Below, piece by piece: positions 9,681 through 46,200 of a stretch of DNA of 64,000 bases (position 1 is its first letter; every line of letters starts with the position of its first letter). The position numbers and the translations under genes are program-made. The stretch spans positions 6,324,001-6,388,000 of the forward strand of contig OZ004609.1 of NCBI GenBank assembly GCA_963924565.1, in the 5' to 3' direction. Source of the DNA: Ascidiella aspersa (taxonomy: Eukaryota). The notes under the pieces are model-generated. The model worked only from the letters and a program-made list of their open reading frames with translations. It was not told where the DNA came from and did no database searches.

Positions 9681-9891
9681 TTATCCGGAGCGATAAGGTC
9701 TCTGGGAACATACGTCACACCAGTTCTTGGCCGACCTGCTGACGTAAGTACCGTGCACTTCAAGGTTATCGGGGGTAACGTGAAGGACATTGCCGAACAC
9801 GTTCTGACACGTGGAGGCGATCTTCATTTCCCGTCGGTTAAGCACATACGACCACATGTTGAAACCGGATATGGAGCCCCTGAACTGCTGG
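9681..9891 (-). CDS. Exon 17 (last): pentraxin C-terminus
   Basis: QQFRGSISGFNMWSYVLNRREM...C...GNVL matches the pentraxin FxGxIxxxNxWxxVL and GNV motifs; acceptor tttag; TAA at 9681-9683. Confidence 0.9.
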
Positions 9892-12800
9892 CTAAAGGAA
9901 ATCATTTGATCTTAGTATTTTGAAGCAAGAAGGCCTCTCAACGGCGCTCAAGCTATCGACGTTTAGTGTTAAGGTAAGTTTGGTTGTGGATATTGAACAT
10001 CAAGCAAAAAACGATCGTTATCTCTGGATGACAAAACGAAAAGGAATCAAACCAATATTTTGTTGGATATTGAATACATATTTATATTGCTCCATTAGTA
10101 GAACATCGGTCCCTGTTTGACCACGGTCGTGAGTTCGAACCTCACCGCAAGCCAGTTGTCCTAGCCTGGCCTTGGCTTGCTCGAAAATCCATATATATTT
10201 ATAAATATATACACATATATGCAACAACGGTTTTTACTTTAGGATTATTAAATAGAAAATAGGATTTACAATTTTATGCAAACATTTTTTTCGTTGGTGC
10301 TGCAACCGTCATAAATTTGCAAACTTTGCACCTCAAAGCCAGAAATACGTTTAGCAAAATATATGATTAACTGAAGAAACGTATCCGTTTAAACCCTGAT
10401 AAATGCTACCACATGCAGGAAAAGTTAATGCTATTGAACAAGCAGTTGTGTTTGGGTATATATATTTAAACATCGCTTTACAATAATTTCATTAACCCAT
10501 TGGTCGTATCGTTTCACCATACGTAAGACCGGTGGTTCTCAACCGGGGTGCCGCGGCAATCTCGGGTGCCATTTTTAACACTCATGGGTGAGAAATATTT
10601 CACATTCTTTAGGATTCCAATTTTTGCTCTATTGTTAAGCTTCTTAATACAATATTTTGTGTACGATAAAACCGCCAAAAATTAAAAAAAATTTGAACCA
10701 TTTTTTACAGTTAATGTGCTATTTCAATCTCGTTTATTTATCGTTACAGTTAACCACCCAGCAAAAACACGAGTAAAGGTGCAACATTCCATTTATAATT
10801 TCTGCATGGATGCCGCAAGCCAAAAAAGTTTGCGAAATACTGCGTTAGTTCAAAACGTAATTAAGTTAAATCTGGTAAACTAAATTGGTTTAAAAACTAT
10901 AATTAAGGATAAAGTTGTTTTGAATATAAAAAATAGCTACGTGATTAACTTGCGAGCTTTGGGGCGTACAGTATACGAAAAAAATTACTGCCTGTTTTGG
11001 GATAATAGAATAGCTATATAGAGCGGATTTGGACTTACTGGTATTGGATGCACCCCCCTGGGCAATCCTGGTCGGTTCCAAGATACAGACTTCCACCGCC
11101 TCTGACCTTGCGGTTAAGAGCATGTGGTTTCTTAGAGGTGCCCAAGATTCTGCCGTTTACGTAAACTATCGACTGTCCTATCCTCCCGTCCCAGCTTGCA
11201 CAGACGAAAGTCCAAATTCGGTGTGGAAGGAACGGTCTGTTGCCTGGTTTGGACAATACGCGTGTTAGCCGTCGAAAAGCACAAAAAACACAAACAAATC
11301 CTCAAACACGTTCACAGTCGAATAGTTATGGGGTTAATCCACTCAAAATAATGTCCTTTGCGTGTGTTGCTAAGTCAGGATTCGTATGAGCCCGTGTTAT
11401 TAGGTTGTTTCAGGTGGCGCAAATGTCGAAATATTAATCTTAATATTACGAAAAGCTTAAAAACGATGCATATTATTGATCACTCAATAAAAACAAACAT
11501 ACTTTTAGATGCCTGCTGATTTTTACTGTGGTATATTTCAAACTTGCCTTTGAAGATCAATAATTTTACGAGATACTATTTTATAGAATTTTACTTTCTT
11601 CATAGAATTAAGCGAATTTTGTTATATAAAACATTTTGAAGTTTAAAAACGATCCAGTAAATTAAAGTTACTTCGAGAAAACTTAAGCTTTAGATACGAG
11701 CATCTGAGTTAACCTGTTGAAATAATTTATTATTTTTTCGACTATTGTGAGCTTCATTGGGATAAGTTAGGAATTCCTTAGCTTGTTATTTCAAATTTAA
11801 TTATACTTCCACACAAACTTACAAAATTCCCCGAAATATATGCCAGCATATATCAATCCATGTTAACGATAAGACCTCTTTAGATTCCAGCTGAACATTG
11901 CAAAGGTAAACGTTGTTCTATATCTATTTGCTATTTCGTAATACCTTGATATCTTTTGTCGTCAACCCGAAAGTGGAAACCGTTCATGGCGTGCAGATAG
12001 AAAAGGATCTCGTTGTCTTCTTCTGGGACAGCATAGCTGAATATCGCCGCATGCTGAAACCTAAAGGATGGCAATTGACACTCTTAAAAACGAGATATTC
12101 TTTCATTCAGACTCTTGGCGTTCTAGTAAAAGCTTTATGTCTAACTCCTTACGTTGTATTTCTCTTAATTTCATAACCAACCAATATCAACTACAGATAC
12201 TGTATTTAATTTGTTGACAAAATACCCTAACAAATTATTTCGCGGACTCCTGGGAAGAAGCCTCCCGGGTAACACCTTTAAAAATATGTATGTATCACAC
12301 ATAAGTCGGGCAATATCATTCCTTTAAGTTTTGTCCCATAAACCGCGTGCCTTTTCGGGTTTCGCCCCAAAATCCTACTCCCCACTAAAGCATTGGACAC
12401 CAAATCCAGGATAATGTCCAATGGATAAAATACCTTCAATCATATATCTTTAATATGAGTTGTTGTGGAGGACAAACTGCAAGCAGCTCAAGCGTAGTGA
12501 TTAACTAACAAACTTGGCTAACTGGATGTTTGAAACATTTGCCATTTAAGTGGCATGAACAGATAGGGATTAAACTGCGATTAACAAAAAAAAAAATTCA
12601 TATGACGTTTTAGCAAAACCCTTATTCATAGGCGATTAGCAAAACCCTATTTCATGAAGTGCCAATGTAAAACTTCTGTTTGAGTTGATAAGCATTTATC
12701 CTACAGTTAATTTCTCATTATAGGTATAGCAACACGTAGGAAAACAATAGGCTTTTGTGATGGAAAATAAATTCATTCAAATAAATACCCTTATTTATAC

Positions 12801-15800
12801 GGTACAGCAATTTAAAATGTTTAAAGAGCAAAACAAACAACGCCTTTATTCACTAAAGAGTATGAAACAATACTCCACTTCTCATGTATGTAATGACACA
12901 CGAAAACACACCTCTGGTTGCTTTTAATCCAGGTGCAAACAGTGAACGCTTCCATTGTGGGGATTGTGGCGTTTACAACTCGAGCCCAATTTTGCCTTTT
13001 CCGCAATCTGGGAAAATCCACCTGGTACGTGTCGCTAAAGCAGCCTGGTTTGGAGAAAGCAAAAAATATATCAGATAAGAGGCTTAAAAGGTGGCTAACG
13101 TCTGCAGACTAACTAGAAATATTTTAATATTTATACGGTAACCACATCACTTTAGACTTACCCTTTTCCATTCTAAACGGGGGCCTGGTGGGTTTCGGTG
13201 TGTTTATTCGAGATCTTGCCATTGTAGGTTTTGTTGTTTTTACTATTGTTCTTTTTGTCGGTTTTGCTATTTCTGTTGTGGCAGTTGTTTTTTTAGGTTT
13301 TGTTGTTGTTGTTGTTGTTGTTGTAGGTGCTTTAGTTGTTGCTGTCGTTGTAGGAGGTTTAGTTGATGTTGTTGCTGTTGTCGTAGTAGGAGCTTTAGTT
13401 GTTGTTGTTGCTGTTGTCGTTGTAGGAGCTTTAGTTGTTGTTGTTGTTGTTGTAGGAGCTTCAGTTGTTGTTGTAGGAGCTTCAGTCGTTGTTGATGTTG
13501 TTGTTGTTGGTGCTTTAGTTGTTGCTGTCGTTGTAGGAGTTTTAGTTGTTGTTGTTGCTGTTGACGTTGTAGGAGCTTTAGTTGTTGTTGTTGCTGTTGT
13601 CGTTGTAGGAGCTTTAGTTGTTGTTGTTGTTGTAGGAGCTTCAGTTGTTGTTGTTGCTGTTGTCGTTGTAGGAGCTTTAGTTGTTGTTGTTGTTGTTGCT
13701 GTTGTTGTTGTAGGAGCTTCAGTTGTTGTTGTTGCTGTTGTCGTTGTAGGAGCTTCAGTTGTTGTTGTTGTTGTTGGTGTAGGTGCTTTAGTTGTTGCTG
13801 TCGNNNNNNNNNNNNNNNNNNNNNNNNNNNNNNNNNNNNNNNNNNNNNNNNNNNNNNNNNNNNNNNNNNNNNNNNNNNNNNNNNNNNNNNNNNNNNNNNN
13901 NNNNNNNNNNNNNNNNNNNNNNNNNNNNNNNNNNNTTGTTGCTGTTGTTGTAGGAGCTTTAGTTGTTGTTGCTGCTGTTGTTGTTGTAAGTGCTTGAGTT
14001 GTTGTTGTTGCTGTTGTCGTTTTAGGAGCTTGAGTTGTTGTTGTTACTGTTGTCGTTGTAGGAGCTTTAGTTGTTGTTGCTGCTGCTTTTGTTGTAGATA
14101 GTTCAGTTGTTGTTATAGCTGTTGTTGTTGCTTTAGTTGTTGTAGGTGCTTTAGTTGTTGTTGTTGTTGTTGCTGTGGTTGTAGGTGCTTTGGTTGTTGT
14201 TGCTGTGGTTGTAGGTGCTTTAGTTGTTGTTGTAGTTGTTGTTGTTGCTTTTATTGTCGTTGTAGTTGGCGGCGCAGTTGGGAGTACATCTGTAGAACAA
14301 GTGTTTTTTATCAATATGGAAATGTTGGTGAAACCAATTATATACAGATTAGAATACCTTCGGGTGGTTCAATGACTTCAACTTTTTCCGCAGTTCGAAT
14401 AAGGTGATTTCCTAAAACGTAATTCTTGTTAAAAAAATCCTTAAATGGTATCACAACGTAGAATAGCTCTGTTTGACTTTTTTCCCAAAGGTAGAAATTT
14501 CAACAAACTTCAACGTTGGATCGCTTGCCATAGCTGAAATACCCAACCTAATTTGTGAATAACACATTGATTCTAGTATCTAACTAGTGCAATATCACCA
14601 ACTGGGTTAATGTTAGCATTAATGCAGATTTTTAGACAAATGTATCGCAATGTAATTTGATTTGAGAAACGCCTACCCGGCCGTTGGGTGAGAGTGACAT
14701 CCACCGGATGGTCTGACTTCGATGTAAGAGTGAGAAAAAGTTGCACGGACGGAGTTCCCGAAACGCCGGATACCACAGCCTTGGCGGTTTGGTTGCGAAC
14801 TGGCCATCCGGCTGTCAAGTCGAACGGATTGAAGAAGACCTCGGCCATGTCGTTGGTAATGTTAAGCAGGAACGCGTGTAGTGCCTATAACACGTTACGA
14901 TCAATGAGCCTTAAAGTTTAAGGCGTAATGTTAGAAGTAAAACGCTGCCCTTTCTTTTTAGTTGAGTTGTTCAAGCCACCAAATCCTTTAACCAAGATAT
15001 TACGGCTTTGTTTTGTAGTTAGTGGAAAACTCTGTCAGCCAAAATTCACGATAATCATATTCAGTTAAACGTTTTGGTAAATGTAAGGATGTTAAAACTA
15101 CAATGAGATTTGGACCGGGTAATTCACACCAGGATACTGAAAGACATAATATATATATCATTTATCAAAAGCAAATAACTTAACTAATTAAAATGGTCGC
15201 AGATATTTTAATTTAGTAACGTTCAAAAACTTTTATATGACTGCTTTATTATATACAATACATACTATGTTGTACACTGTACAGTGGTATGTTATTCGGA
15301 ATATGCATTTGTGGATTAAAAAACGTATTTGAATAACATTAGCAAGAAGAGCTTGCTCAGCTCGAAATTTAACTTGAAACTCGCTATAGAAGTTTTACTT
15401 AGCTGTCAGTAGTTTTTTATTAACTTTTGAATAACACGTCGCCACTGTAGAGCATTACATAATAAAGTGTAGTAATATTGAACGTTTTGTAAATGTCACT
15501 AAATTAAAACGCCAACTATGCAGCATTTTTCATCAGTGATTGTTGAAGATTTTCTCAAAAAGTTAAACATAAACTCCTTAGCAATGGAAAACACACACTT
15601 CTAATATCGCCAACATTGCACAATATAGCTACAAACTCCTAATGACTTTGTTTTCAAAGGACTTACATCGTTGGGATCCGTAATGTAGGTGGACCCGACC
15701 ATCACGAGCGATCCGTTGGCCGTTTCCAGTCGGAGTGTGATTCCCTTGTCAGTAACCTGTATCTTCAAGTGCTTTTCTTCGCCGGGAAGGAACACGCCTA

Positions 15801-18800
15801 AAAGTTGCTGTAAATTAAGTCAATGAATTGCGTAGGCCTACTAAGTGCACTTAATTCACTGTTTTAAAATTACTTGATTTTACTTTAGTCTTGCGACTGC
15901 TATGCCTCGTTTGCAGCTGGCGAACGCTTTTTTTATTAAATGGCCAGGTATCCCGGAACGTTTTACAATTAAACTTGAAGTCGCTTTGAAAATTTAGACA
16001 TACCTAACCGATTGGCCAAAATATTCATAGTTTGTTCTCTTTTCAGCAGAGTTGCCATTCTAGATTATTTTAATCTAGAATTAGATGTTTTGGTTTGAAT
16101 CTAGATGTAGGATAATGCAGATTTTGATATTAGGTAAAGATACGCCGTACGAAGAGGTATAAATATAATAACTATTAAAAGTGTTAAGTATGCCGACGTT
16201 GGTAATAACAAATAGCCATGAACCTCTCTTTATAGCTAATACGGTAAATTGTAAAAATAAGTTTTTTTAATTTAGCATTCTACGTAATTTGAAAAAGATG
16301 TTTTGAATTGTACATGCTCAAGTGTACTTCCACTTAGATACATAAATCGTCTTTTAATACATACAATTTACATAAAAAAAACTCAAACACAAAAAAGTCT
16401 TCAAGAATATCAAGTCATGTCAATCGCACCATCTTGGTTTATTAAAAACAAAATTTCTTGTGAAGTCCAACGCTGGCAGTAACAAACAGTCATTCACTTA
16501 ACATCTGGATGAGTATAATAACAAATTCCAAGAACTATATTTATTTTAATATGACAGATTACTTACTGTTTACTTCCTGTTGAGCAGGTGGCCATCTCGC
16601 AGCTTCAGTGCACGCTCTACTTTGCAAGACCTGCTTCACGAACTGCAAAGATCTAAAAGCAATTGGCAACGTTATCAACGACATTCCAAACACGGCCATT
16701 TTTACGTAGAAAAGAAAATGAAATATATAGCAAAGAAATACGGCTCTGGTCTAGAATCCTGCCACAAGGAGCATTATTTGGGTTAGGGTGCCGTTTAGCG
16801 TTTGGGTTTAGGTGGTTGAGCAATAATATTAAATAATAATAATATTTGACCCAACCTCACCCAAACACTCAATAATGTTATAATTGGTTTTGCACTTCAA
16901 TCCTGTTCGCCCACTGCTGGTTGTTCAAATGTGGTACAACTATTGCGTTACTGCCAAAGCTGTACTACAATTGTTGTTTGTTAATTCTATATGACAACTG
17001 ATGTTAAAGAAGGGTTATTAAACTATAGTTATGATTAAGTACCAAACAGCAAATTTCTTGTCTTTACTGCTCTTTGAACAAACTATTTGACTAAGTCTCA
17101 GGAGTGGGGAAACAATTTTGACTCGAGGCAGAATTGGAGTAAATAATTAATATTTAGCACCCTAAATTATCTTCTGGCTTATCATCTAAAGGACCACCGT
17201 GTTTCACTGGTAACCTATGGCGCTTTGTAGTGTTTGAAAATCCACTAAAAATATATACACTTAGACAGAACATCATGGGCTTCGTGTAAGTCGAGTTATT
17301 TCTGATTTTTGTTTATTATAGTAATAACAAACCTTGCTTTAATTTTTTTATATCAGTGGTATGAACAAGCAAATTTTAATTGACTGAAGTCCCAACCTAA
17401 TACGTAAAGAATAATCAAAGTGAGCTCAAGTCATTTTGCCAAAAAAAACTTTACAACACTCGGTTTTAACCTTCTCGTCAAGCTTTCGCACAATCGTGCT
17501 TCATCAGGTCAAAGTCACCCAATGCTTGCCGAGAATTCAATACAATTTTACTTTATACAGTGCCACCTGATTTATCTTAAGTTTTATTAACGTTTAGTCT
17601 TGTGGAAGATTGCTCTTAAAACTGAGTTAAATAGCATCAGATTGTTTGGGGCTTACTTGTAGTTTGTGATTTCAAACACGTGGGTGGACTCGGCGCCGCT
17701 CGCGATGGTCACCAGTTCGTCTTTGTTGACTACTTCAGTCACTCCAACAGCGAAAACGTTGATCCCGGACAAATGGTTGCGACGGGCGGCGGCTACAAAG
17801 AGTGATACAAGAAACACGTTTTACTCATCTTTGCAAAATGCCTAGCGGTAAATGTTTTTTCGGTAAGATGGCTTACGAGCACATTCCTTTTGAAAATCCT
17901 TTTAAAATTCGACCTGTCCCGTAAATAACAGCATTTCATAGAATTGTCGCAACAGATTTAAATTTTATAGAAATAACGATCATTCCTGAAATTGCTTACC
18001 CTATAAAATGGAGCTGATTTTGTACGGAAGGGTTAAGAACCGGGGAATAATTCAAATCAAGACTCAGTTATGCTTTTCGTTAGCTATACATAGGAAATAA
18101 ATCATATAGATATAATAATATAATAACTTGTGTTGAACTAGTCTTTTTTGCGACTTGAAAGGTATGCGATTTTTGTAAATTAAAGGATGCGATTTTTTGT
18201 AAATTAGCGACAAAAGATAGAAAATGTGGGGCATTTACAAAGAAGGACCTTTTTCAAATGAGGACATTGTTTCAATATTGAAATATTTGTAAATGGACAA
18301 AAATAAACAAAACTATAAAATTCGCCAATAGGACAATGTGATTTTGATTATGGTTTAATGAGATTGCCAAAAGGGATTAGTTTGCATGGGAATAGAAAAC
18401 CCACATTTTTAAATTAGAGAGGAAAACTTTGTGAATATAAAAACGTAACATTAATGAATACGTATCAAAATGTTTTGAGAACAAGAATTTGTAAACGGAA
18501 ATTTAAAGATTTTTGAATAGGAACGTTAAATCTGAAAATTGGGTACAGAAGGTGTATATTATATATATGTCTAAATATCCAAATAATTTGAAAAGGCCAA
18601 AACGTGAATTGAGGATAAACATTCACTAAAATGAGAAAACATGTCTCACAGATGACGCTGTCGTGGCTCTGTCCGTCCGTCACAACGATAAGGACCCTCG
18701 GAACGAGCTCGGATGTCCTTCGTGCTCCTCTGATGGGAGTGAACATCCGTCGGAAGACAGTGTTAAGGGCAACGCCCGTCAGGGTGGTTCCACCTTTGTA

Positions 18801-21800
18801 TTTGACGCTGCAATGAAATGGAATTTCAAGAATCAAATAAAATAAAAGTATCGGTGGTGCAAACAGGAAGTTGACTAGTTCGGGAATCATCAAAAGTTTT
18901 TTTGTTGGCCAAAGTTGCCCAGCATGTGTTGGCCCGTAACTATTTATTCAAATTAACATCAGAACCATTATGTTTTTTTCATTTTAACTTTAGTACGCAA
19001 GTCACAGCGGTTTATTATCTTAAACACTGCTAAGAGTTATTGGTGGATTTTTTAATTAACTGCTAACCTTTACAATCTCAGCACAGTGAATGCTATCACA
19101 TTAAAAAATGAAAACAAACGACGATTGAAACGTAGTTGTCCATACAGCAACAGTTACTGAAGGAAAAGTTTAGCGAATAAATTAGGGGGCAATTAGTTTA
19201 GGGTTGGACAGGATTGCAGACACCATTATGATTATCCGCCCGCTGTTTTGATAAGAACTTTGGTTGGTTTTCTGAAAACTATATTAGTACTCTAAATCTA
19301 TCAAATATTCTGAAGGAAACTCCTACTGGCGCGCCAGTTAAGTGCGGCAAAACTGCGTTATTGTGTAAGTGGTTTAATAATGTACTTAACAAATGTAAGA
19401 GTGCCCCTGGCTTAACTTTGGTTTACGTTTAAATGACTGAATATTGTCAACCTACCATGACCGCAATGCTAGGTGAAAACTGCCTCTTTGGTTAACTTGA
19501 AAAACTCCCTTCTTTATCTAATCTATTCGTTAAAAGTTTTCGGCTTTTTCGGCAGAAACTGGTACGACAAGCTTGGAAGTGAACACAAACAATTAGACCT
19601 TGAAACCTTTCGAAATTCGAGGATATTTGGCAGCAAACGCCTTCCTCCAACCAACGTTTAGAGTGTGTATACAAATTGCGGGCATAAAGCTTAACCTATG
19701 AGCATCGCACGTGCGCGTCTAAAGGCCTTCGATCTTATCAGTTCGAGAAAAATCTCAGTCTCACTTGCGGATCGCCTTCAGCAAGGATGGTCGGTTGAAA
19801 TGCTCACGCAAGTAGAACTCGACCCGCGGAGTTCCCGAGTATTGCGCCATTCCCACCCTGGCACCGTTGCGATCGATCTGGAAAAATAAGTGCGCGAAAG
19901 GTCAGGGCATCACGCGATAAGCTTTCGTCGAATCTGGCGGAAATTTTGTAAGTTGATAAACAAGCAATCTATACCCAGTTGTCTGTATTTTGATGGACCC
20001 CAGCTATAAAAAATAAACTACAACAACATCAAGGTCGGAACAAAACACACTTCAGAATAAGACTAAAATAGGACTACTATTATACCTAAAAGCCGTATTA
20101 CCTAAATCAACATATGTCCTAACTCGTCGGTATAAGACCTAAATGGCCATATTTAGGTCTAAACAACGTTATACCTAACCCCAGCCCCACCCGCAAGTGG
20201 GCTACATCACTAACTCTCATATTAATTCCAGCCCTAACCTATTTACTAACCCATCGCATTACTCACCAATAACCCGAAACAGGGCCATAAACTACGTTAC
20301 CAAAACAATGGCTCCCTAACGGCGCCTATCAAACTAGGGAGCCCAAGTGGCCGATACCAGGCCCATGGCCCCTGATTGTCCCGTACGCTCTCCCTAAAGG
20401 TTCATGCGTTATTTTATGCCTTATTCGGATGAATTTAGGACTTATTCTGACAGGTTTGTCTCTTATTCAGGCGATTCAGATCTTATTATGCCATGATATT
20501 AATGCGTATTAGATTTATTATTTTCGTTGGTCTTAATTATGATTTAGATATTGTTGCTTTTTAGGTCTTATAGTGTGTTCCCATTTTGATTGTTTTAAAG
20601 TTTTGCGCACTTTAGATTTGCAATTTGACCTTATTTTTAATTCCTAGTCATGCATACCTTAAAACTGTTACACAAATACTTTGTAATTTAAAAATGCATC
20701 AGTTAACTAGATAACAACGGAAAATATTTGGACATGTTGTACATGACCTTGCTGTTTTAAATTATTATGTTCGCAATACAACTCTAACGATGTGGATGTG
20801 ATTTTGTGGTCACAGCTCGTTTTAATAACCAATATTAGCCTCTATAATTGCTCCTGCACGTTTGGTGCGTTTTTACAGTTGAGCTCAAGAGCTTTAATAA
20901 GCCCTCTGGATGAATTTGCGATGTGGTTTTTCACATTAAGCGTTGAGAGGCTTAGCTGCGTGCAATCAGGACAAACTTATGGTTGGACTTTACAAAGGTT
21001 ATTAACAATTCAAAATGGCATTTTGCTAAAAAGGAGCGGTGCAGGTATGTGAACTTAAACAAGCAAACCGCAGTGCGATAAACATAGACGTTTTATCACG
21101 CGAAACGTTTTGCTAAAGTTGTTTCGTAAACTCTTAAAAGCCTATTAAGACTCGTGCGTCGAAACACCTGGTCCTTGCGGATTACTTACGTAAAGCATGG
21201 GGACAATTTTAAGCATTAGGGTTAACAGCGACGGTTTAACTTATGCGCGTTTTTTCAAAAGTAAATTCCAGAAATAATTTGAAAAGAAAACAGTATTAAA
21301 GTTAAAAAAAATAAACTGTTTCCTTTTCGAAAAAAATTAGCTTAATTTTAACAGTGTGGAAACATGAGTATTCATATTTCACCATGTTGAAAGAAAATAT
21401 ATATATTTACTCAATAGCTAAACTTGTAAAAAACTTGTAAGTCTTTTATTAGGGCTTCAACATTGTTCAACCATGATGTAGATCTTAATATATTTTCAAA
21501 CTGATTTGATTTTATTCAGTTCAAATTCAGGTAAAAGCACAATAGAAATTAGCCATAGATCCGCTAAGCTCTATTATCACAAGAGAATCTAAAATACGTG
21601 GCACATTTTAATTATTTTAAATATTCGTAAAGACGTTCCCCTGCTGGCCATCATCATGTCTAAACCCAACTTCGTCGGAGCAACTAACATACCGTGAGTG
21701 GCTCTATAAGACTTTCGACGAAATCCATGGCCCGTTTGAAGTCGGAGAATCCAACGCTTCCGCTACCGTCCATTAGGAAGATGAGATCCACTTTTCCCAC

Positions 21801-24800
21801 TGCACAAGCTGCAAAAAAAGTGTTTTTTTCACTGATTATACCCGTGTTGTATTAACTCAAGACATTGACTTGACTTAGGTGCACTTAAGTTTCTATTTTC
21901 AAATAAGTAGACTTTACTCAGGCATTTTGGGAGAATTGACTTGTTTTGACTATACTTAATTCTTTCGGAGAAATGACTTAACTAGACTTATGTCTTTCAA
22001 ACAAATTATATAGCTATGTTGAAATTAAGTGTTGTCACTCAGAATTTTTTTTACAAAATTGGTTTATTTATCTTAATTTTTGCAGGAGCTTATTGTATTT
22101 TGCATTTTTGTTATTTTTAGTTGAGTTATTGTTCATAATTGGACGAGTTTCTCCATTGTAATATTTTAACGTTTAATTTTTATGAAAACGACTTGACTTG
22201 GAATTGACACGCTCTAATTATGACTTTATTTGCTGTTTATTCAAAAAAACTTAACATCGACTTGAGGTATTTTAGAAATCAATTAAATTGCACTAGAGTT
22301 GTTTAACCAATGGCTTGACTGGGACTAAAATCTTTTTAAAATGATTTGTTTACAACACTGGATTATATTATCATTTGTGTGTGATTGTTGTTTCTTCGTT
22401 TTATGGTTGTACGACTGTTCTTTTTCTTTTCAATCTTCCTTTTCCACTCACGCAACTTATATCGCTCCTTAACTTTTGCAGCTTACCTTTGCCGCTTTAT
22501 ATCTGATCTTATTACGTTTTCTGTTGGCCCCTAATAACAATTAGTTTAGCCACATTCGGCACTGACACCTTTTTACCCTCGTTGTGGTTTTAGTGGAAAT
22601 GAATGGAAAATTAGAGCAGACGGGTTTTTAGGAAGCGCAGGAAACATTCTAAACTATTGAAATTTTACGTTCTCGCTCGTTTTTAGACATTGGTCGCTTT
22701 TGGTTGTTTTACGCCTTATATTGTTTTATTCATATTTCTTCCTCATTTAACACAGTTTAAATATAATTTTCATTCCGCATAGCATTCGACAGGACGTTTA
22801 GCATAGGACTCGCAAATTGGTGTAACATAATTACAAGTTTATTTGTAAAGCTCATTTGGAATGCTAGTATGTCTATTGTGTCGTTACGAGCCCAATACTG
22901 AGTATGAGTTCTAACCGGTGGGCCACAGAAACGTTTTGAGGTGGGCAACAGAGCATTGGCAAAATTGTGAAGTTGGTGAAAATTTTTGTTCTGTTCGTTT
23001 ACTTCTTTAATTTATTTTATAATACAATCTCAAGTTTTGCATGAACAGTTGCGATATGTGTAGGTTATTATAAAATATTCTTATTTTTTATTGTTTCAAA
23101 ACAAAAGTGGGCCACGACCGAAAAAAGTTAAGAACCCCTGATGGAGAGTGAATCTTGACACCTATACTGTTAGACACGAAATTCCTTTTTGTTAGACCGT
23201 TTTTAGTTGCCAATGCTTGTTTTATTATATTGATTTGTCTCCAATCACAAAAAAGTCGACCTATTTAGTCCCGCTATCACAATAAACCACGAAGTAATAG
23301 CAATTACGGGTGTTTTTGTGGTTGTACGGTTCAAAGTGGACTTCACGTCAAATCTTGAACCGTGATGATTCATGATACTAACCTATTAATTATTAAATTC
23401 ACACTACTCATTTGCGAAAATATGTTGCCTCTAAATATAACTATTCAGTGTTATTTAGTCGTAAATAAAACGCAGAAAACATAGGACTCCCCTTTAAAGT
23501 TACGATGAGTTGCAGTCAATATTTCGGATGTATGGACCGTTGCGATAATGTAAATCCACGATAAAACCTGTTTTGCTAGAAGTGATTTAGTGATGGAATG
23601 CAGATAAGATAACTAAGTCCTAAACCTACACAGCCCCGGTACACATAGTCCGCCTTAATAATGACGCTTAAGTTTTTTTACGTTAAATTACGTTAAATCC
23701 TTATAAACTTGGAGGACTTAGTCTGAACAACTTTTTACGTTATCTTGGCCCAATAGTGGGTGTGCAACTATCATAAGATCGTTCGATGCAAAAGCGTAGT
23801 TAAATATCCAAATCGTGCGATGTTTATCATCGCCAATTTTAGACGGTTTGGACTTTTTAATATTTAGAGTCAAAATTTTCCGTATTTTGTGTCGAATTTT
23901 GAAAATCCTCCATCAACCTTACGAAAGTAATTTCCTAAAACAATACACTTTGAACGCTTTGGGCAAGTATTCATGCTTGTAATCAGTGTTACATTTATTT
24001 CCGTCTATTTACTTTATACTGAAGCGAAAAAATAATTCCGCCAAGGACTAATTTAAGTGCGAAAATGCTTTTAAATAACAATTAAAGAGTGATGTTGCCC
24101 TGGAGCCTGTAATCATTCTAAACCGTCGTTAACTGTATTGCAGCGTCATAGCGGCCGCAGCATAACAACTTAAACAGGCAGAATGCCATTTTTCTGTCAG
24201 TGCATATTGATCCTAAACTAAGTCATTGGCATCGCGAAAGCAGGTCAAGAAATCTGCCTATACAGTCCCTTATGTTTTTTATCCAAGTTTATTTCAGGTT
24301 AGTTTCCAAAAATGTTGAGGTCAATCCTTTGTTCAACTCTAGTCAAGTCATTAGCTTCATCTATTATAATAAAGATGAAATTTTGACTATGCATTATGAT
24401 TAACTACAAATTCTAAAGTAGTTATTAACCGGAGGGATGCAAGCTTTATTACACATTGTGGATTTTTCTTGTTAAGTTATTTGTTCCGCAAGTTAATTGT
24501 GCATTGTTAATTGTTCCGCCAACTAACCTATACTGTTAACAAACCAACTATCGAAAAAACGTTAAATTTTCTCTTAAACAAAATAGGTGAACTTTTAAGT
24601 TTAAACAAAATGGGAATATCCTAAACTATAGTTTTCTCAACATACACAAACGCACATAGGCCCTTCAATCGTGAGTACAGTTTTAAACAAAGTTGTCAAA
24701 CAGGCTTTCGGCTGTTATTCCAAGTGTCAACATTTTCCCAGTACTTACTGTCGTTCCTTTGCTGTTGATCGACCATCTCCACAAACGACGAGTTGGTGAC

Positions 24801-27800
24801 GGTGGAGACCTGGTCCTTGCTTACCGTGCCCTGGTCCCTATCGCTGTTATAGAAGTGCTTGATCCAGATCACGGCTTGTGAGTTGATGTCCTTTGGGATG
24901 TCAGGGTAGAGCAGAGACAGGTACAGGCGAGCGGCCAGGCCCGAGTACATAGGTTTGCGCAAGTCGACCCACTTTACGTCGCGCCAATCGATGCCGAATC
25001 TCCACTTGATTCCCTGAATCTGCGCGTAGAAAAATAGAGGGTTGCGTTTGGGAACGGATCATGTCTTTAAAAGATCCTAAGTACTTGAGACTTTGGTGCC
25101 CTATATGCGTCATTCAAAAATAATTGAGAGTTTAGTTATGGGTAATTTACTTGATTTCTGTTACGGAAATAGTTCTGCGACCTACAAACATTAACAGCGA
25201 GGTTTAAGATGATAGTTTATATTTCATATATCAAGGGGCCACTATTGAGGTCTTGATCTGTCTAAATCTGACCAACTCAAAAAAAACTTTTTTTTTAATC
25301 AAATCTCAGTTGTGGTACTCGGGGCCTATATGCTACTGTTTCACCACGGAAATGCAATCAGGCTCTACAGTTATGATTTGCGTTTCAGTGCAGCAAATTC
25401 CCATATAAGAAGTACATATGTAAACAACGACTAGGACACGCTAAAACATATCTTGGCTTCATAACCGGAAAACACTATCTTTTGCATTTAAGTAAAAAAA
25501 ATCACAGTCGGGGTTTGGGCAGAGTGTTTTTACAAAAACAGTCGTTTGTTTTGTTAGGCAATGTGATGATTTAGCGAGTATAAAATGTAATATATTTCAT
25601 CAATGACTCACCCGGTTTTGAGTAGATCACAACAAAAAATAAGTTTTTGTTATTCAATCCGCGACTGTGTTATCAAAAACCTAATTTCTATGCTATCAAA
25701 CAAACCTCTGATACCGCGCTATACGATTTGAGCATACCTGCGTTCTTAAATCCGGCGACATTGTTTCATTCAGCATTTCTTCGCTCACGCCCCAAATGCC
25801 ACCGAAAAAATACGGATCATCGTACGTTCCTGGCACAGTTCCTGAAAATGAGGGTAATAGTTTAAAGTATGTACGTTTAATAAATAGAGCTAACTAGATT
25901 ATTGTTTTAAGGTGAATGTATATACTTAGCTATAAGCACCGCTGAAAATTTTCAACCCTTCGAGGCCCTTTCTTAAATAGATTTGCATCCTTTTAGCCAT
26001 TTTATTAAATCGATTGTTTACTCTATATGACCCAAGAACAATTACTTCTTCGAAGTGATTAGCAAAGAAAAAAAAATAGAAAAAATGTTTAGGAGCAGTT
26101 TAGCAATTTTGCTTAGAACACAACAAAAATTGACACGTATCAAATATGTTTACACATAACATAACTTAATAATACTTAAAGAACTACTGATTGTGTAACA
26201 AAAGTTAGGGTGTTTTAACCGTACTAACAGTGGAAAATCCAAGTTGTCCTTTAAGCTTTAAAGGTAAGAAACAGAAGAACACTGTGCGGAAAATTGCAAG
26301 CTGTTGTAAGGAGAAAGGAAAGTCTTTATAAGGGTTTAGGTTTGCTCGGCGACGGGTACACTTTAGTAAGATGTTAGCAGCACGTCTTTAGCACGTCTCA
26401 ACTCCTTGCTACTTGAACAATGGATCAACTCCAACAACTTTATGTTCTAATCATCGCATTTAGTTGGATTGCTTCACCATATTTGCATGTCCAAAATAGT
26501 CAAAAAAAGCATTTTCACAATGTCATTATAAAACCTATGATGTATTAAGAGTAAAGCAATAAGAAAAAGTATAATTGATTCATCAACAGAAAGGTGTTTC
26601 TTTTTTTCATGTTTTAAACTTTGGGTTTTTTACTAGAACCTGCGCTCGAACATTTGATTATGCCTGACACATTTTCACCCGATCCACAGACGTATAGAAG
26701 CTTATGTCCAAAACACGGTACGATTAAGCGAAAAGGGATGTGGTTATAACGCAAGAATGGTCCTTTTTGAAACACTATTAACTTGAAAAACGGGTAGCGC
26801 CATCTGCGATACATATCTCGGGCATCTTAACCACGTTTTTCGTCTTATTTTAAAAGAACTTATTCAAAAATTTTGCATTTCACGCAAATTTATCAACGGT
26901 CGTTTTTTCTGATAAATCCATTTTAAGGATAAAATCACCCTAGAATAAATAATCCTAATCAATTATTAAGGTCGATTTACTAAAAAATACTTTGATATTT
27001 TGTGTTTAGTGTTTCCAAAGGACTTCATGTCTACCAACAGACATGAAGTAATAAAAATATACGTGCAGTAGTATTTAAACTATGTTTCGTAGTTTTTCTT
27101 TGTAGGAGAATGTTAGCTATAAAGGTAAAAACGGCTAATGATTACACGTAATTTTGCATTAAGAAAAATCTTTGCGTAAATATTACAGAATCAACTTTTC
27201 AGACGCCCGTCCAAGAATGAATTTCGTGAATTGCTCAATTCCAACTAGTGTGGCCAATCCGACCGCGCTAACATCAAGGCAATAAATATCACAACAGAGC
27301 AAATTACCGTCTCTCGTTTGAACGTATGCCAAGCGCCGCATAAGCAGAAAATCGTTGGAGAAAACTTGCGACACGTCCAACTTCTGAACGACAGCTTGGA
27401 CCACCTCCGGGCCTGAAATTCAGATTACAATCGCATTTGGACCTGCGACATTTCCACCCCTGAAGGCGAGTGTTAAAACACAGAGTGGTTTTAGTAAACA
27501 ACATTATGAATGAAATGTTAGTTGGCCAATTACGTAAGTCATACTAGCCGCAAAAGTGCGTATGAATCCTTAAAGGTGCGCTAAAACTAGCTTAAGCACC
27601 TGGGTGAAATATAAATTCAAGCAACAGTTTATCAATAAAATCGACCTCCTCATGTCAGCGTTATAAACCAATATGGACAGTATATTCCAAAGACCGCGTT
27701 AAATACTTACTACGAAAAATTACTTAAAATACCAATTAACTTAAAAACAAGCATCATAAAATAGTGACAAGATTACCATAGGTTAACATTAAGTCTATTG

Positions 27801-28033
27801 AAGCCATTATAGCCTATAGGTAAAATAGTAATATTAATCTCAATACTTTCACTAAAAACAATAGGTTGCAATAGTCAGGGAAAATATTACTCTCCAGAAC
27901 CCTAAAAACATAAACACGACAAAGACAAACCTCTTGCGCCAGGCCAGAGCGTGAAATCGATTGGTCCCTCAAAGTAGTAGACTGCATTGGCCGTTCCGAA
28001 CACACAGGACAAGGCAAGGACCAAACGCAACAT
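9681..28033 (-). CDS. Secreted mosaic protein, 17 coding exons, about 1125 aa: signal peptide, lysozyme/transglycosylase-like domain, VWA, beta-sandwich, Thr-rich mucin, pentraxin
   Basis: Exons 28033-27931, 27412-27308, 25841-25738, 25019-24749, 21808-21693, 19877-19765, 18807-18650, 17792-17657, 16652-16567, 15797-15667, 14884-14677, 14411-14358, 14289-13162, 13044-12912, 12060-11945, 11243-11039, 9891-9681. All 16 introns are GT-AG with matching phases; total 3378 nt including 132 N. Confidence 0.88.
10105..10225 (+). mobile_element. tRNA-derived SINE-like fragment in the last intron
   Basis: B-box-like GAGTTCGAACCTC in a T-arm-like stem followed by a TA-rich tail; no complete cloverleaf. 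Confidence 0.45.
10530..10842. mobile_element. Degenerate hAT-type MITE
   Basis: Left end CGGTGGTTCTCAACCGGGGTGCCGC; right end TGCCGC...AAAAAGTTTGCGAAATACTG; flanks match at 5 of 8 positions. Confidence 0.6.
11039..11243 (-). CDS. Exon 16: pentraxin core
   Basis: WTFVCASWDG (pentraxin signature-like), VYVNG, GGSLYLGTDQDCPGG; phase 1 to 2. Confidence 0.92.
11945..12060 (-). CDS. Exon 15: pentraxin (absent from ORF track)
   Basis: FQHAAIFSYAVPEEDNEILFYL contains the pentraxin FSY...DNE motif; phase 2 to 1. Confidence 0.92.
12912..13044 (-). CDS. Exon 14: pentraxin N-terminus
   Basis: CFSDTYQVDFPR...PTMEAFTVCTWIKS (FP...FTVCxW motif); phase 1 to 2. Confidence 0.92.
13162..14289 (-). CDS. Exon 13: Thr-rich mucin-like stalk with (T)n-K/E-A-P repeats; includes N gap 13804-13935
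   Basis: Open frame of TTTTKAP/TTTTEAP repeats between acceptor ttctacag and donor G|GTAAGT; phase 1 to 1. Confidence 0.9.
14358..14411 (-). CDS. Exon 12: 54-nt linker
   Basis: GNHLIRTAEKVEVIEPPE; acceptor ttttag, donor AAG|GT; phase 1 to 1. Confidence 0.75.
14677..14884 (-). CDS. Exon 11: second half of unassigned beta-rich domain
   Basis: ALHAFLLNITNDMAEVFFNP...VQLFLTLTS...VDVTLTQRP; phase 0 to 1. Confidence 0.85.
15667..15797 (-). CDS. Exon 10: first half of unassigned beta-rich domain
   Basis: VFLPGEEKHLKIQVTDKGITLRLETANGSLVMVGSTYITDPND; donor GTAAGT; phase 1 to 0. Confidence 0.88.
16567..16652 (-). CDS. Exon 9: VWA C-terminal helix and closing Cys
   Basis: SLQFVKQVLQSRACTEAARWPP; phase 2 to 1. 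Confidence 0.85.
17657..17792 (-). CDS. Exon 8: VWA domain
   Basis: GINVFAVGV...DELVTIAS...HVF; phase 1 to 2. Confidence 0.93.
18650..18807 (-). CDS. Exon 7: VWA domain (MIDAS Thr and Asp)
   Basis: YKGGTTLTGVAL...GAR...VPRVLIVVTDGQSHD; phase 2 to 1. Confidence 0.95.
19765..19877 (-). CDS. Exon 6: VWA domain
   Basis: IDRNGARVGMAQYSGTPRVEFYL...LLKAIR; phase 0 to 2. Confidence 0.93.
20037..20581. mobile_element. Degenerate foldback/MITE-like element with internal CCTAAC repeats
   Basis: Left arm rich in ATAAGAC/CCTAAA, right arm rich in the complements GTCTTAT/TTTAG; imperfect ends GGAAC...ACACT and AGTGTGTTCC. Confidence 0.5.
21693..21808 (-). CDS. Exon 5: VWA N-terminus with MIDAS DxSxS
   Basis: CAVGKVDLIFLMDGSGSVGFSDFKRAMDFV; phase 1 to 0. 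Confidence 0.95.
21842..22360. mobile_element. hAT-type MITE (CAGTGTTGTAA/GACTT family)
   Basis: Ends CCGTGTTGTA ... TACAACACTG; flanks GATTATAC and GATTATAT (7/8 TSD); internal GACTT(G) repeats. Confidence 0.8.
22903..23140. mobile_element. Degenerate hAT-type MITE
   Basis: GTGGGCCAC motifs at both ends; right end AAAAAGTTAAGAACCCCTG. Confidence 0.55.
24749..25019 (-). CDS. Exon 4: C-terminal half of lysozyme-like domain
   Basis: FGIDWRDVKWVDLRKPMYSGLAARLYL...IP...QAVIWIKHFYN; donor A|GTAAGT gives the phase 1 needed by exon 5. Confidence 0.85.
25738..25841 (-). CDS. Exon 3: lysozyme-like domain
   Basis: GTVPGTYDDPYFFGGIWGVSEEMLNETMSPDLRTQ; acceptor ttttcag, donor CAG|GTATG; phase 1 to 0. 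Confidence 0.85.
27308..27412 (-). CDS. Exon 2: start of lysozyme-like domain
   Basis: GPEVVQAVVQKLDVSQVFSNDFLLMRRLAYVQTRDG; phase 1 to 1. Confidence 0.85.
27931..28033 (-). CDS. Exon 1 (coding): signal peptide
   Basis: MLRLVLALSCVFGTANA|VYYFEGPIDFTLWPGAR: hydrophobic core and A-x-A site; donor AG|GTTTGT phase 1; acceptor-like tttagccag just upstream of the ATG. Confidence 0.85.
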
Positions 28034-29220
28034 CCTGGCTAAATTAACGCACACAGAAAAACAAGCATAAAGTCTATGTCAGTAAACTTAAATAATATGT
28101 ACACACTTGTACCCATGTAACAGGGATCAGCTGCTGTAAACGTTTAAAGCCTGTATTCGATTACATTACGCCAGATAAGATATTTTACGAGCGGCACATA
28201 ATTTAAAACCATTAAAAAAGTTTTTAATTTTGGATTTAAACCTTCTGACTATTTCAGTATATTGCTCTTCGTTATAACTGAACTAACAGATGCTCCAAGC
28301 ATATTTATAGGAGTCTCCACGTAGGCGTTTTGCTTTATAAATATGCCTGTCTGCCTGCCCGATGCTATCTGGCCCGACGATCTTCCAATCTCGAAATGTT
28401 TGTTGTATTAAAAGACACAGTATACTTGCGGCCGGTGCGCCCTGGCGCAACTAGAAGACCAAGCTTCCTATGATGTCTTCAGAAAACCAAACCTTCTAAT
28501 TGGCAAATTGATCAAAATGTCAAAATCTGGGGTAGCCAGATAGTTAATAATGGGTTTTAACACAAATAAAAACGCTTTTCAGATTCCCGCGGAAAGATTT
28601 TTGAGTTAAAATAATATTTTATTCTGGTGTTGTATAGGACATCCATACATCAACTGGTAACCTTTGTTGGCCAGGAATTATACACTATAGTCCAGTTTGT
28701 GCTATCTTTTGATACACCTGTTAAACAAAGGATTAAGTACCAACGATCTAGTCATTAAAAATACAATTGATGTTTTAAGTAGGTATGAAGCTTTCTAACA
28801 ACATAGACTCGGTTGAAATTGAAATAAAAATCATATTTTTATGGATAGATGACTAAACTTTTTTTTCTCAATAGTAAATATATTCCGTTCTTGTTTACTG
28901 AGTTGGAATTTTCTGCAAAAAATGAGCAATTCGAAAAAAATGAAAAAATCAACACAAAGGCTTGAACAGGTATAAAACAACTTCATTTAAAAACACTAAA
29001 TACTTTATTCACGACGAGAAAGACTTAAATTCAATGTTTCTGAAATTTCTTAGTGTTTTTTCAGCATTCCTTGAACTGATAATGCCATTATCGGTGTAAT
29101 TCTGTGTTTAAAATAAAGTCGTTTTTAATCTTTCTGAAATAATGCTTTATTTAATATGCGACCCGATATATATCAACTCATAGGCGCGATATGTTTCTTC
29201 TGACGCGACATTTAACTGAA

Positions 29221-43200: not shown

Positions 43201-46200
43201 ATCTTTGCGTCTCATTTGGGATTTTATATAATACAGTGATTCATCAAGTTAATTATCATTGTTATCTCAATTAAACTTTGATATGTAAGCATAGTTTGGT
43301 GCTCTAAACCTTAATAATAAAATGTCCCTAGGTATGTAGCTGTTTTCTAAATAGGCTGTATCAATTTGGGATCCTTAAAGCAGTTTTCCGCAAATAAAAA
43401 GTGTCAGATCTGAATCGAACACAATAACGGAATATAGCCGGACTCAATTTTTTAAGATTTGTAATGTGGGGTTTAAAATAAATAAACCGAAAATTATTTT
43501 TTTGGTGAAAAAACCTTCGTTTTAAATTCCACGAAACGTCCACAGTATCAGTAAACGAGATAATCAGGCCAGTCAGGGTATGATGAAAAACTAAAATAAT
43601 TCAATACATTTTGATATTAAACATATTAAACATGTTGTAATGTCAACCTCTTATTTAGTGCCAGTAAAAGAGAATGCTGTCTTTATAGACAAGAACGCGG
43701 CTGCAACAAGAAAATGCAGCAATGCAAGAAGCTTTTAACAACGAATTCTGTAAATTTATTTCCCGAAGTAAAAAAGGGAATGTATAGGGCACTTAGTGGG
43801 CGGTTAGCAACGTTGAAAAAAGCAGAAAACCGCATCTAACGCCAATTGTACACGCTTCCGCGAAACAATCAACGAAAAGCTTGCGAGAAGCCGAAATTCC
43901 CCAAAACTTTCCCGCATGGGCTTGGCACCGTGCCAGAACGCCGTACGGCGAGATTGTTTCATGACAGTTCCGTGCGTCATATACGCGGTCTTCCAAAGTC
44001 ACGCTAAGTTTGCGGCGTCGCAATGAATACGTAATGAAACGAGCCGGATGTTGGAATGGGGTAAAATGGGATGATGGGGTTTGTCTGTGCTGTAAAGACT
44101 AAGTCAATGACTTGAATTAAGCGGACTTAAGTCACTGTTTTTCTTCTTCAATTATCTTACTTGACTGAGGTCTATCGGATAAAATGTCTTGGCTTTACTT
44201 AAGGCTTTCGGACAAATGAGGGTTGTAAATTGTGTTCAATAGGCATTTTTCATTAAAAAAAATGGATTCCCAAGTTACGCATATAAAACAATTTGCTTGC
44301 TTAAATTTGGCGTCTTATGTTATGTTATAGTTGAGGTACTGCTCATAATCGGATTAATCTTGAAATTCAATTTGAAAACGTTAACGCTTAATTTGTATGA
44401 CAAGGACTTGTCTTGAAATTGACTTGCTCTAATACTTCCTTATTCAAAATATATTTAAAATGACTTGATTTGCACTGGAGTTATTTCGAAAATGAATTGA
44501 CTGGTACTGAAGTCATTTAAAAATCACTTGGTTTGAACACTTAGATGTTTAAACCCGCATTAGGGGATTTTGGAAACATCTCCCAATAAAATTGCGGTAG
44601 TTCTACAACGAGGCATGTTTGACATTTTTCCTCCAATGGTAAAAAGTATTAGGAGTTAACAACATTAATTATATAAAGTTACCACTTGTTGAGCTTAAGC
44701 GTTTAACTAACATGGAAGACAACGATCATGTGTTGGACGAGTGCTCACACTGTGCCTTGCCAAAGCAATGTCAAATAAACCGGGTGGGCAAACAACCGGA
44801 CAAAAGGCGTCGCGTGCCGTCGACATTTTGCGGACGGGGAAAGAGAACCAAAAAGAAAACGGTTCAAATCGACGCGATTTCTTCCTCGTGAGTTCACCTG
44901 TCGCAAAACTTTCCACGCGCTTCCAAACGAGTTCCTTTATAACTGGCGACCGCAAACCGGGAAAAACAGCTCGACGCGGCTCGCGAAGACCAATATTTGC
45001 AGGACTCTGTGACGCGCGTTTTTTTTCGGTAATTCGCGCTTAGAAAGCAAACGCCCGAGTGGTCGAATATAGTCGGCGCGGCGCTATTTTAAGTGCGGTG
45101 TACAAACAGAACGTTTTTTTTAAGTCGCGGCCCTCTCTGTTATCCTTTCACATTCCGCAAGCTGGCAAATTACACGTACGCCGTCGCCTTGCACCAAGCC
45201 GCCGATTTTGAACGTGAACCCTCAACTTAAAAGCGAAAAATAGAAAATAATATGCACTCGCCGAATGGATAAACTATAAAAGCCGGACAAGTATACTTTG
45301 CACTTCTTGCGAGAAAATTTCCTAGCATTTTGGTTTATACAAAACGCTATAATATTAGTGGAAACAATGAATGTTCGGGGCATTTTAGTCCAAGGGAAAC
45401 ATTACGAATAATGCTGCAGAAGGTAAAGAAATATTAGAAATTATAAGTGTCCTACAATTTCAATCAAATAATGTTTTTTAGCATTTTATGCGACATAAAC
45501 AAATATATTGGGCTTGCTACTGTTTTTTAAAGCAAAAAGCAGAAAACTGGAAATGCGTTTCGGAAAGCTTAGACCTAGAAATTAAACAACTCGCCAATTC
45601 TCCAAATCAAGTGTTAGCAAAGTTGACCACTCCGAACCGAGGTAAATTGATTCTTAATTCAGGTATGTTTTCTATCTTTAAATAAGCTGATGAATCTAAA
45701 GTAACTGTAGTACTTACAGTAAGGGTCGTTGTCGTCTCGCACGAAGGTCGCCGTTCCGTCCTTGTCTATCCTAAGCGTGGTCCCTCCTTGTTTGTGGTAA
45801 ATGGTGTGCTGTTGGGCGTGAACAATTCCTCCGGACAAGCTTTCGCTCGGCAGGGATCCGACGTTGCTTAGAGCGTAGTCGGAAGATGATGAGGATACAG
45901 GTATCGCAAGATCAACTTCGTCATCCTCCTGTCGATCCTTTGCAAAGTCTTTGAAGATGTCGCCTAGGGACGTGTACTCGCCCGGTCGCGAGGGGGCATA
46001 GCGCTTCACGTGGTGGCCGTGACGCGACAGGCGACGCACCAAACGCGACAGGCGTTGTCGCGTGTCGCGCCGTCCGCCTTCAAGCAAGAAACGTAATTCG
46101 CCGAGGAACCGCACATCTTCGGCACTTAGGTTGCGCGAACTGAAGAGCTCATCCAGAAAGTCAAGGAACTCGATTTGTGTTGCTTCGTCGATGTCGCGCG

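Follow-up and report, generated by a model that had tools for sequence, protein, structure and literature searches.

Introduction

The GH23 family-1 lytic transglycosylases, among them MltE, MltC, Slt70, phiKZ gp144 and the N-domain of T7 gp16, belong to the lysozyme superfamily together with the goose-type lysozymes (GEWL/LYG) and the GH23 chitinase of Ralstonia sp. A-471. MltE and Slt70 share an E-S pair, a G-L-M-Q motif and a late Y-x-N-G; the Gln of the second motif contacts the N-acetyl group in SLT enzymes, and the equivalent motif in GEWL reads G-L-M-Q-V-D. In unrelated families, hydrolase folds without the catalytic residue have been kept for recognition or binding beside active paralogues: non-catalytic peptidoglycan recognition proteins (PGRPs), chitinase-like lectins of the YKL-40 type and alpha-lactalbumin. 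Here we describe a domain encoded on the minus strand between positions 28033 and 24749 of a 64 000-nucleotide stretch of the ascidian Ascidiella aspersa (GCA_963924565.1, contig OZ004609.1, positions 6,324,001 to 6,388,000; the window). Judged from profile matches and from models of its homologues, the domain is a member of an unannotated branch of the lysozyme-like superfamily, nearest in fold and motif order to the GH23 family-1 lytic transglycosylases, and its catalytic Glu has been replaced by Gln.

The GH23 family-1 enzymes have the same order of motifs as this family and are the best structural matches of models of two family members (Z 8.0-9.2); phage members of the family sit in an ejection-protein context like that of T7 gp16. 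The locus differs from these enzymes in having no Pfam SLT match, in the Trp that stands for Met in motif II of the animal members, in the Gln, Gly and Ser found at the cleft in the window, and in its fusion to VWA, mucin and pentraxin parts. The Ralstonia chitinase is the top Foldseek match in the PDB, whilst the goose-type lysozymes give lower structural scores than the lytic transglycosylases; in contrast to them the window domain lacks the Glu, and a search of the whole genome, exon by exon, found no match to Pfam SLT or GEWL. In sequence, the animal members are related to PHROG 3108, which includes Gp54 of phiKO2 and the C-terminal domains of T7-like internal virion proteins. These phage copies have the canonical residues, and their context suggests that they probably degrade peptidoglycan; the window, by contrast, holds an intron-containing animal gene in which the catalytic residues are replaced and of which exon 4 alone reaches phrog_3108 at only E=0.13. 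The PGRPs, the chitinase-like lectins and alpha-lactalbumin have different folds and families and are functional analogues only; by that analogy the window domain may likewise bind.

Results

The N-terminal domain belongs to an unannotated phage and invertebrate family

The window has a GC content of ~37% and looks like part of an intron-rich animal genome. On its minus strand, four short open stretches with GT-AG introns between them (exons 1-4; Table 1) encode a signal peptide and a domain of ~170 amino acids. Exon 4 ends in phase 1 at 24749 (donor 24748) and makes an in-frame junction with a VWA exon that starts at 21808, so that the limits 24749-28033 coincide exactly with exons 1-4. Every motif quoted in the first-pass annotation of this region was recovered from the minus strand: RRLAYVQTRDG from exon 2, GGIWGV from exon 3, and DLRKPMYSGLAARLYL, IP and QAVIWIKHFYN from exon 4.

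The exons were searched singly; the family profile and the structural models were built from homologues. An exhaustive search with exon 4 against 1.84 billion representative proteins returned 442 proteins at E<=1e-3, 18 of them at E<=1e-10, a number far beyond chance. When a profile of 56 stand-alone family members (alignment A1) was compared with the window, exon 4 matched at E=2.1e-24 and exon 2 at E=1.7e-5, with exon 3 aligned in register, and all four exons map colinearly onto homologues and tile the domain. The profile match thus covers the whole domain and places it in the family of lytic-transglycosylase-like proteins found in phages and invertebrates. Named members come from molluscs (Haliotis, Saccostrea, Argopecten), annelids (Owenia, Helobdella), echinoderms (Acanthaster, Patiria, Amphiura), mites (Medioppia, Halotydeus) and a tunicate (Clavelina). 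Many are secreted-looking proteins of 170-250 amino acids; in others the domain is N-terminal and is followed directly by VWA (from about residue 160-205) and then by CBM_14, EGF, MAM or pentraxin. In public records such proteins are annotated for their VWA, CBM_14 or pentraxin parts only, under names such as 'uncharacterized', 'matrilin-2-like' and 'collagen alpha-1(XXI)', and the N-terminal domain is named in none of the curated libraries (PHROG 3108 is labelled 'unknown function').

Sequence searches for a described relative gave little. The single exons matched nothing in Pfam or among PDB sequences, NCBIfam had no match for the N-domain, and a profile search of the PDB with A1 returned two chance matches only. 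Pfam SLT (PF01464) found no match above its gathering score in any exon, in the 56 family members or in the phage members; the sole trace of SLT was in one member (P0004, E=0.0026, below the cut-off). An Atlas feature search with exon 4 gave unnamed clusters, and lysozyme-type families only at a low score (0.78-0.79), which we treat as a lead and nothing further. A word search with the N-domain of the Clavelina orthologue found that protein alone. Literature searches on the family returned nothing, and it is also absent from a recent survey of horizontal gene transfer in tunicates.

Three cleft positions are replaced in the window

The first-pass annotation had claimed that the order and spacing of motifs fit the SLT and goose-type folds, with Gln at the position of the catalytic Glu and G-I-W-G in place of GxxQ. 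Both points hold in the family alignment, which comprises 115-176 domain instances, the number varying by position. Of 115 domains, 103 have Glu as the last residue of the helix that precedes the long loop (six have Gln, three Ala and three another residue), and in 113 a Ser or Thr comes next. Motif II, G-G-I-W-Q-V-D, which recalls the GEWL motif, lies some 15 residues further on; its Gln is present in 91 of 136 domains and its Asp in 75%, and in phages the motif reads G-I-M-Q. The late Y-N (motif III) is present in 80 of 172 domains with coverage at this point.

At these places the window has Gln-Thr, G-G-I-W-G-V-S and Y-N. It therefore has neither the catalytic Glu-Ser/Thr nor the G-L-M-Q of the SLT enzymes, and the context of its motif III, H-F-Y-N-S-D, has flanks unlike A-Y-N-x-G. 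Three cleft positions (Glu, Gln and Asp) are replaced whilst almost all other conserved positions are kept: Ala64, Gly83-Gly84-Ile85-Trp86, Trp120, Pro131, Tyr133, Ser134, Pro150, Gln158, Trp162, Tyr166 and Asn167, in the numbering of an animal family member that we modelled (P0018). A sequencing slip is unlikely at motif II, since at least two bases separate the Gly codon from every Gln codon.

The correspondence to the catalytic Glu of MltE was approached in two ways. In the P0018 model the Glu closes the helix 59-68, and the structurally aligned ranges set it within two residues (<=2) of MltE Glu64. Alignment of A1 with MltE and the C-domain of Slt70 by hhalign pairs VES with IES and GGIWQ with GLMQ (E 0.081, probability 0.7); this is not significant and is used for register only. 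PDB entries for MltE E64Q and Slt E503Q carry the title 'inactive mutant', and because these are the same E-to-Q change the window domain would be unable to cleave glycan. Loss of catalysis, by this analogy, is a strong inference.

Models of homologues have a lysozyme-superfamily fold

Fold models were made of one animal member (P0018) and one phage member, so that the lysozyme-like fold is that of homologues. The AlphaFold model of P0018, made with alignment A1, has a mean predicted local distance difference test score (pLDDT) of 88.5, and ~97 for residues 30-180. In the PDB, Foldseek gave no match at E<=0.001; its list was nevertheless headed by GH23 proteins, namely the chitinase of Ralstonia sp. 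A-471 (probability 0.85-0.90), g-type lysozymes, MltE and phiKZ gp144. A scan of 48,161 chains that was independent of Foldseek placed MltE first (Z 8.5, root-mean-square deviation (rmsd) 3.7 Å over 128 amino acids, model residues 36-187), followed by phiKZ gp144 (Z 8.1), Slt70 (8.0) and MltC (8.0). Rows 1-47 were all enzymes of the lysozyme superfamily (GH23, GH73, GH19, GH22, GH24 and type VI secretion system muramidases). Among viral models (BFVD), a protein of an uncultured phage came first (E=3e-6, rmsd 2.4 Å), and LT_GEWL and SLT proteins ranked lower.

The model of the phage member, built from a different alignment (pLDDT 86.4), gave a similar list: MltE (Z 9.2), MltC (9.1), a fungal GH23 muramidase (8.8) and gp144 (8.7), with T7 gp16 further down. 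The g-type lysozymes appear in both lists at Z 5.5-6.3. With these scores, with no Glu at the position of LYG Glu73 and with Ser for the Asp after motif II (LYG Asp86/Asp97), the window domain does not group with LYG. The case for the fold is made by two lists that are uniformly lysozyme-superfamily and by coverage of the whole domain; the lysozyme or lytic-transglycosylase fold that had been suggested from the sequence alone is thus borne out in that both family models match GH23/SLT enzymes best over the entire domain.

The replaced residues are shared with an orthologue beside canonical paralogues

The closest public protein is an uncharacterised protein of 996 amino acids from the ascidian Clavelina lepadiformis (P0050), in which Pfam finds VWA at 204-377 and Pentaxin at 788-965. 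Its residues 44-993 are colinear with the window from 27416 to 9696 in fourteen tblastn segments without a frame break, the lone stop in these segments lying beyond a splice donor; the locus is therefore one gene. The gene model runs from 28033 to ~9690 and encodes a signal peptide, the N-domain, VWA, an unnamed conserved domain, a mucin-like part and a pentraxin. The first VWA exon (from 21808) shows a DGSGS MIDAS motif. The best-conserved exon of the gene, at 15798-15664, falls in the unnamed domain and is 71% identical to Clavelina over 45 amino acids. The unnamed domain also covers 14675-14884 (minus).

Between the window and Clavelina the N-domain exons are 38-63% identical (exon 2 63%) and the VWA exons 52-60%, so that the two sets are conserved to a similar degree. 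P0050 likewise has Gln (VQS) and Gly (GGIWGL), and it has additionally lost the Y-N, which reads FR. The Gln/Gly state is thus conserved in a second ascidian with the same architecture.

A profile search of the contigs revealed at least 15 further family loci in the same genome (Table 1). In most of the paralogue loci whose motifs were read, the canonical ES and GGIWQV are retained, and this holds for every such copy in the tandem cluster on C7. It follows from these canonical paralogues that probable active enzymes, as predicted from their motifs, coexist with the dead fused copy. One of the two C1 paralogues (L011) reads Ala-Ser and AGIWQV and is a second probable dead copy. Some paralogue matches carry stop codons, and these may be broken copies or introns.

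Phage relatives carry the canonical residues

A phage link had been suspected from the C-terminal half of the domain, and it proved to be real: relatives occur in PHROG 3108, in podophage contigs of IMG/VR and in GenBank phages. Against PHROG 3108 the animal members score E=5.7e-18 and 8.8e-10. Relatives that are 33-39% identical to animal members (E 1e-25 to 7e-31) are encoded on four contigs of IMG/VR, beside a head-maturation protease and a ribonucleotide reductase. In a metagenomic protein of 853 amino acids (P0040) the domain is at the C-terminus and the gene lies in a T7-like structural module, with the order connector, scaffold, capsid, tube, nozzle, gp14-like gene, P0040 and a gene for 1514 amino acids. 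Ejection proteins occupy that position in T7, where gp16 carries an SLT domain. On this metagenomic contig (L020, 8001-10562) the domain is thus C-terminal in the protein that follows the gp14-like gene, whereas in T7 gp16, the largest internal protein, it is N-terminal.

Among GenBank phages the domain is present in Klebsiella phiKO2 (Gp54), Salmonella PMBT28 and Shewanella 1/44, always as a 'hypothetical' protein, and all phage copies that were read have the canonical E, Q, D and Y-N. Because the phage copies are canonical, the original job of the family was most likely the cutting of peptidoglycan, as judged from motifs and by analogy. Gp54 of phiKO2 (163 amino acids, unannotated) is a canonical member encoded directly after a 101-amino-acid protein with three hydrophobic segments and a holin-like look (gp53-gp54; L021, 3100-3899); the phiKO2 record instead marks gp60 as holin-like, and a role of Gp54 in lysis is no more than possible. 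A pattern-based scan of bacterial and archaeal genomes with the phage protein found no relative, which is weak evidence of absence.

A quick, unrooted tree of 111 domains was made with P0050 as the stand-in for the window domain. The phage sequences fall in one poorly supported sub-group of canonical sequences. Clavelina sits on a long branch in a 12-member clade (Shimodaira-Hasegawa-like approximate likelihood ratio test (SH-aLRT) 94); eleven members have VWA by Pfam, one was not scanned, and half of the clade (6/12 domains) has no Glu. Over the whole tree, the loss of Glu requires at least nine state changes. Since the tree is unrooted and most of its rows carry no taxon label, the direction and date of a phage-animal transfer are not readable from it. 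Raw counts of VWA fusion against Glu loss are skewed and an independent-pairs test had too few pairs, and we claim no correlation. Intron-less genes on short metagenomic contigs of eukaryotic or bacterial origin (L019, 3.5 kb; protein P0135) encode lytic-transglycosylase-like plus VWA proteins in which Glu is replaced by Val or Ala.

Discussion

The reading that we favour, and consider fairly probable, is that the N-domain of this secreted multidomain protein is a dead lysozyme-like module of the phage and invertebrate family, probably kept to bind a polymer of the N-acetylglucosamine/N-acetylmuramic acid (GlcNAc/MurNAc) type. Exons 1-4 code for its secreted N-terminal part, in which Gln stands for the general-acid Glu, Gly for the motif-II Gln and Ser for the Asp that follows, with the fold-defining residues kept. 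Such a domain would presumably be unable to cleave glycan and may have been retained as a non-catalytic binder of peptidoglycan or chitin. A chitin ligand is plausible for three reasons: CBM_14 is frequent among relatives, the best structural matches include a GH23 chitinase and complexes with chito-oligomers, and GH23 enzymes handle chitin too. Through such binding both heads, VWA and pentraxin, would be placed on microbes or within chitin-rich mucus or matrix, and the mucin stalk, the VWA (with its MIDAS) and the pentraxin would together form a two-headed recognition or matrix protein.

Several points weigh against this. There is no sequence-level link to SLT, with the Pfam, NCBIfam and PDB sequence searches all blank, and the hhalign alignment to MltE and Slt70 lands on the catalytic motifs and is statistically not significant. 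The fold evidence comes from modelled homologues and not from the joined domain of the window, and Z values of 8-9 between models and known structures are middling, only moderately above those of unrelated models. Loss of the motif-II Gln could weaken the putative glycan binding, and the S-E-E acids beside motif II could take over some role. Finally, no RNA reads fell on 22101-28100 in one run of the species, of which ~6% was read; given the small fraction and the unknown tissue, this is not evidence of silence.

Those acids are the basis for supposing that the domain is still an active hydrolase or transglycosylase which uses another acid, either the Glu-Glu after motif II or the Asp three positions past the Gln. 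An acidic cluster does directly follow motif II in both ascidian orthologues (S-E-E in the window, E-E-E in Clavelina), and the Asp of Q-T-R-D is present. However, the general acid of GH23 is the helix-end Glu alone, E-to-Q mutants carry PDB titles that call them inactive, and the +3 Asp also occurs in canonical members and so is not a replacement. Moreover, three cleft positions have changed together and Clavelina has lost the Y-N, which suggests relaxed catalytic constraint; we regard continued activity as improbable. A dead domain need not bind sugar either: it may be a structural or protein-interaction module that, for example, packs on the VWA or supports oligomerisation. The recurrence of the lytic-transglycosylase-like domain followed by VWA in molluscs, annelids, echinoderms and tunicates suggests that the pair acts as a unit, and the Gln that would contact the N-acetyl group is the one lost in the window. 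Yet many VWA-fused members keep all catalytic residues, so that the fusion needs no dead cleft, and the window keeps Trp86, Tyr133, Ser134, Tyr166 and Asn167 (P0018 numbering), conserved positions that may line the cleft. On balance we think that a purely structural role is unlikely, though less so than residual catalysis.

The absence of RNA reads might also be taken to mean that the locus is a decaying or unexpressed copy in which the substitutions are neutral drift. This can be given very little credence: the fourteen segments colinear with Clavelina contain no frame break, the introns of the N-domain have canonical splice sites, and the same Q and G are found in a distant orthologue, with almost every conserved non-catalytic position kept.

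A wider scenario is more tentative, and we rather doubt it than believe it. A wall-lytic phage domain of the kind found in T7-like ejection proteins may have been taken up early in animals and may now form an undescribed class of lysozymes in invertebrates throughout the Bilateria; the VWA-fused lineage might then have repeatedly made a dead peptidoglycan or chitin sensor which, with a mucin stalk and a pentraxin, would be a new secreted pattern-recognition molecule. The locus is not a new kind of thing, because its fold belongs to a known class and pseudoenzymes are a common phenomenon; what appears to be new is the family itself, its spread over invertebrate phyla with close phage kin, and the recurrent dead form fused to VWA. 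If the interpretation is correct, the c-, g- and i-types would be joined by one more class of lysozyme-like animal enzymes, closely related to phage proteins, and the locus would be a clean natural case of an enzyme turned into a binding module beside active paralogues in the same genome. It would also make the gene a candidate for the recognition of microbes or chitin in a chordate relative, and PHROG 3108 would gain a testable function.

Features of the locus

Table 1. Positions of the exons, key codons and domains of the gene in the window, and of family paralogues elsewhere in the genome
Feature	Position	Strand	Remarks
Exon 1	27931..28033	minus	ATG at 28033-28031; hydrophobic, signal-peptide-like start; donor GT at 27930; weak colinear match to Clavelina P0050
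Exon 2	27308..27412	minus	First helices of the lysozyme-like domain; ends RRLAYVQTRD + G via a split codon, motif I with Gln for the catalytic Glu
Gln codon CAA	27318..27320	minus	Glu in 103/115 family domains; aligns with MltE Glu64
Exon 3	25738..25841	minus	Loop and motif II, GGIWGVS against family GGIWQVD
Codons GGC GTG AGC (Gly-Val-Ser)	25783..25791	minus	Family consensus Gln-Val-Asp
Exon 4	24749..25019	minus	C-terminal two thirds of the domain: GIDW, DLRKPMYSGLAARLYL, IP, QAVIWIKHFYN, QGT...F; nearly all conserved positions kept
Motif III Y-N	24846-24851	minus	Within exon 4
Four VWA exons	17614..21808 (~21808-21693, 19883-19764, 18806-18618, 17787-17614)	minus	Pfam VWA on exon pieces; tblastn of P0050
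Unnamed conserved domain, exons	14675..16657	minus	Between VWA and mucin; no Pfam match
Mucin-like exon	13127..14368	minus	Thr/Pro-rich, short repeats; 132-base N run at 13804-13935
Pentraxin / laminin-G-like exons	9696..13045	minus	C-terminus; limits approximate (tblastn)
Paralogue tandem cluster	Contig C7, 7.52-7.65 Mb		L002-L004, L006, L008-L010, L012
Four paralogues	C5, 28.44-28.57 Mb		
Two paralogues	C1, 33.91-33.93 Mb		L007, L011
One paralogue	C9, 14.96 Mb		L005

Elsewhere in the window, an uninterrupted open reading frame of 348 amino acids at 45659-46705 (minus) has one hydrophobic segment and Arg/Ser-rich stretches.

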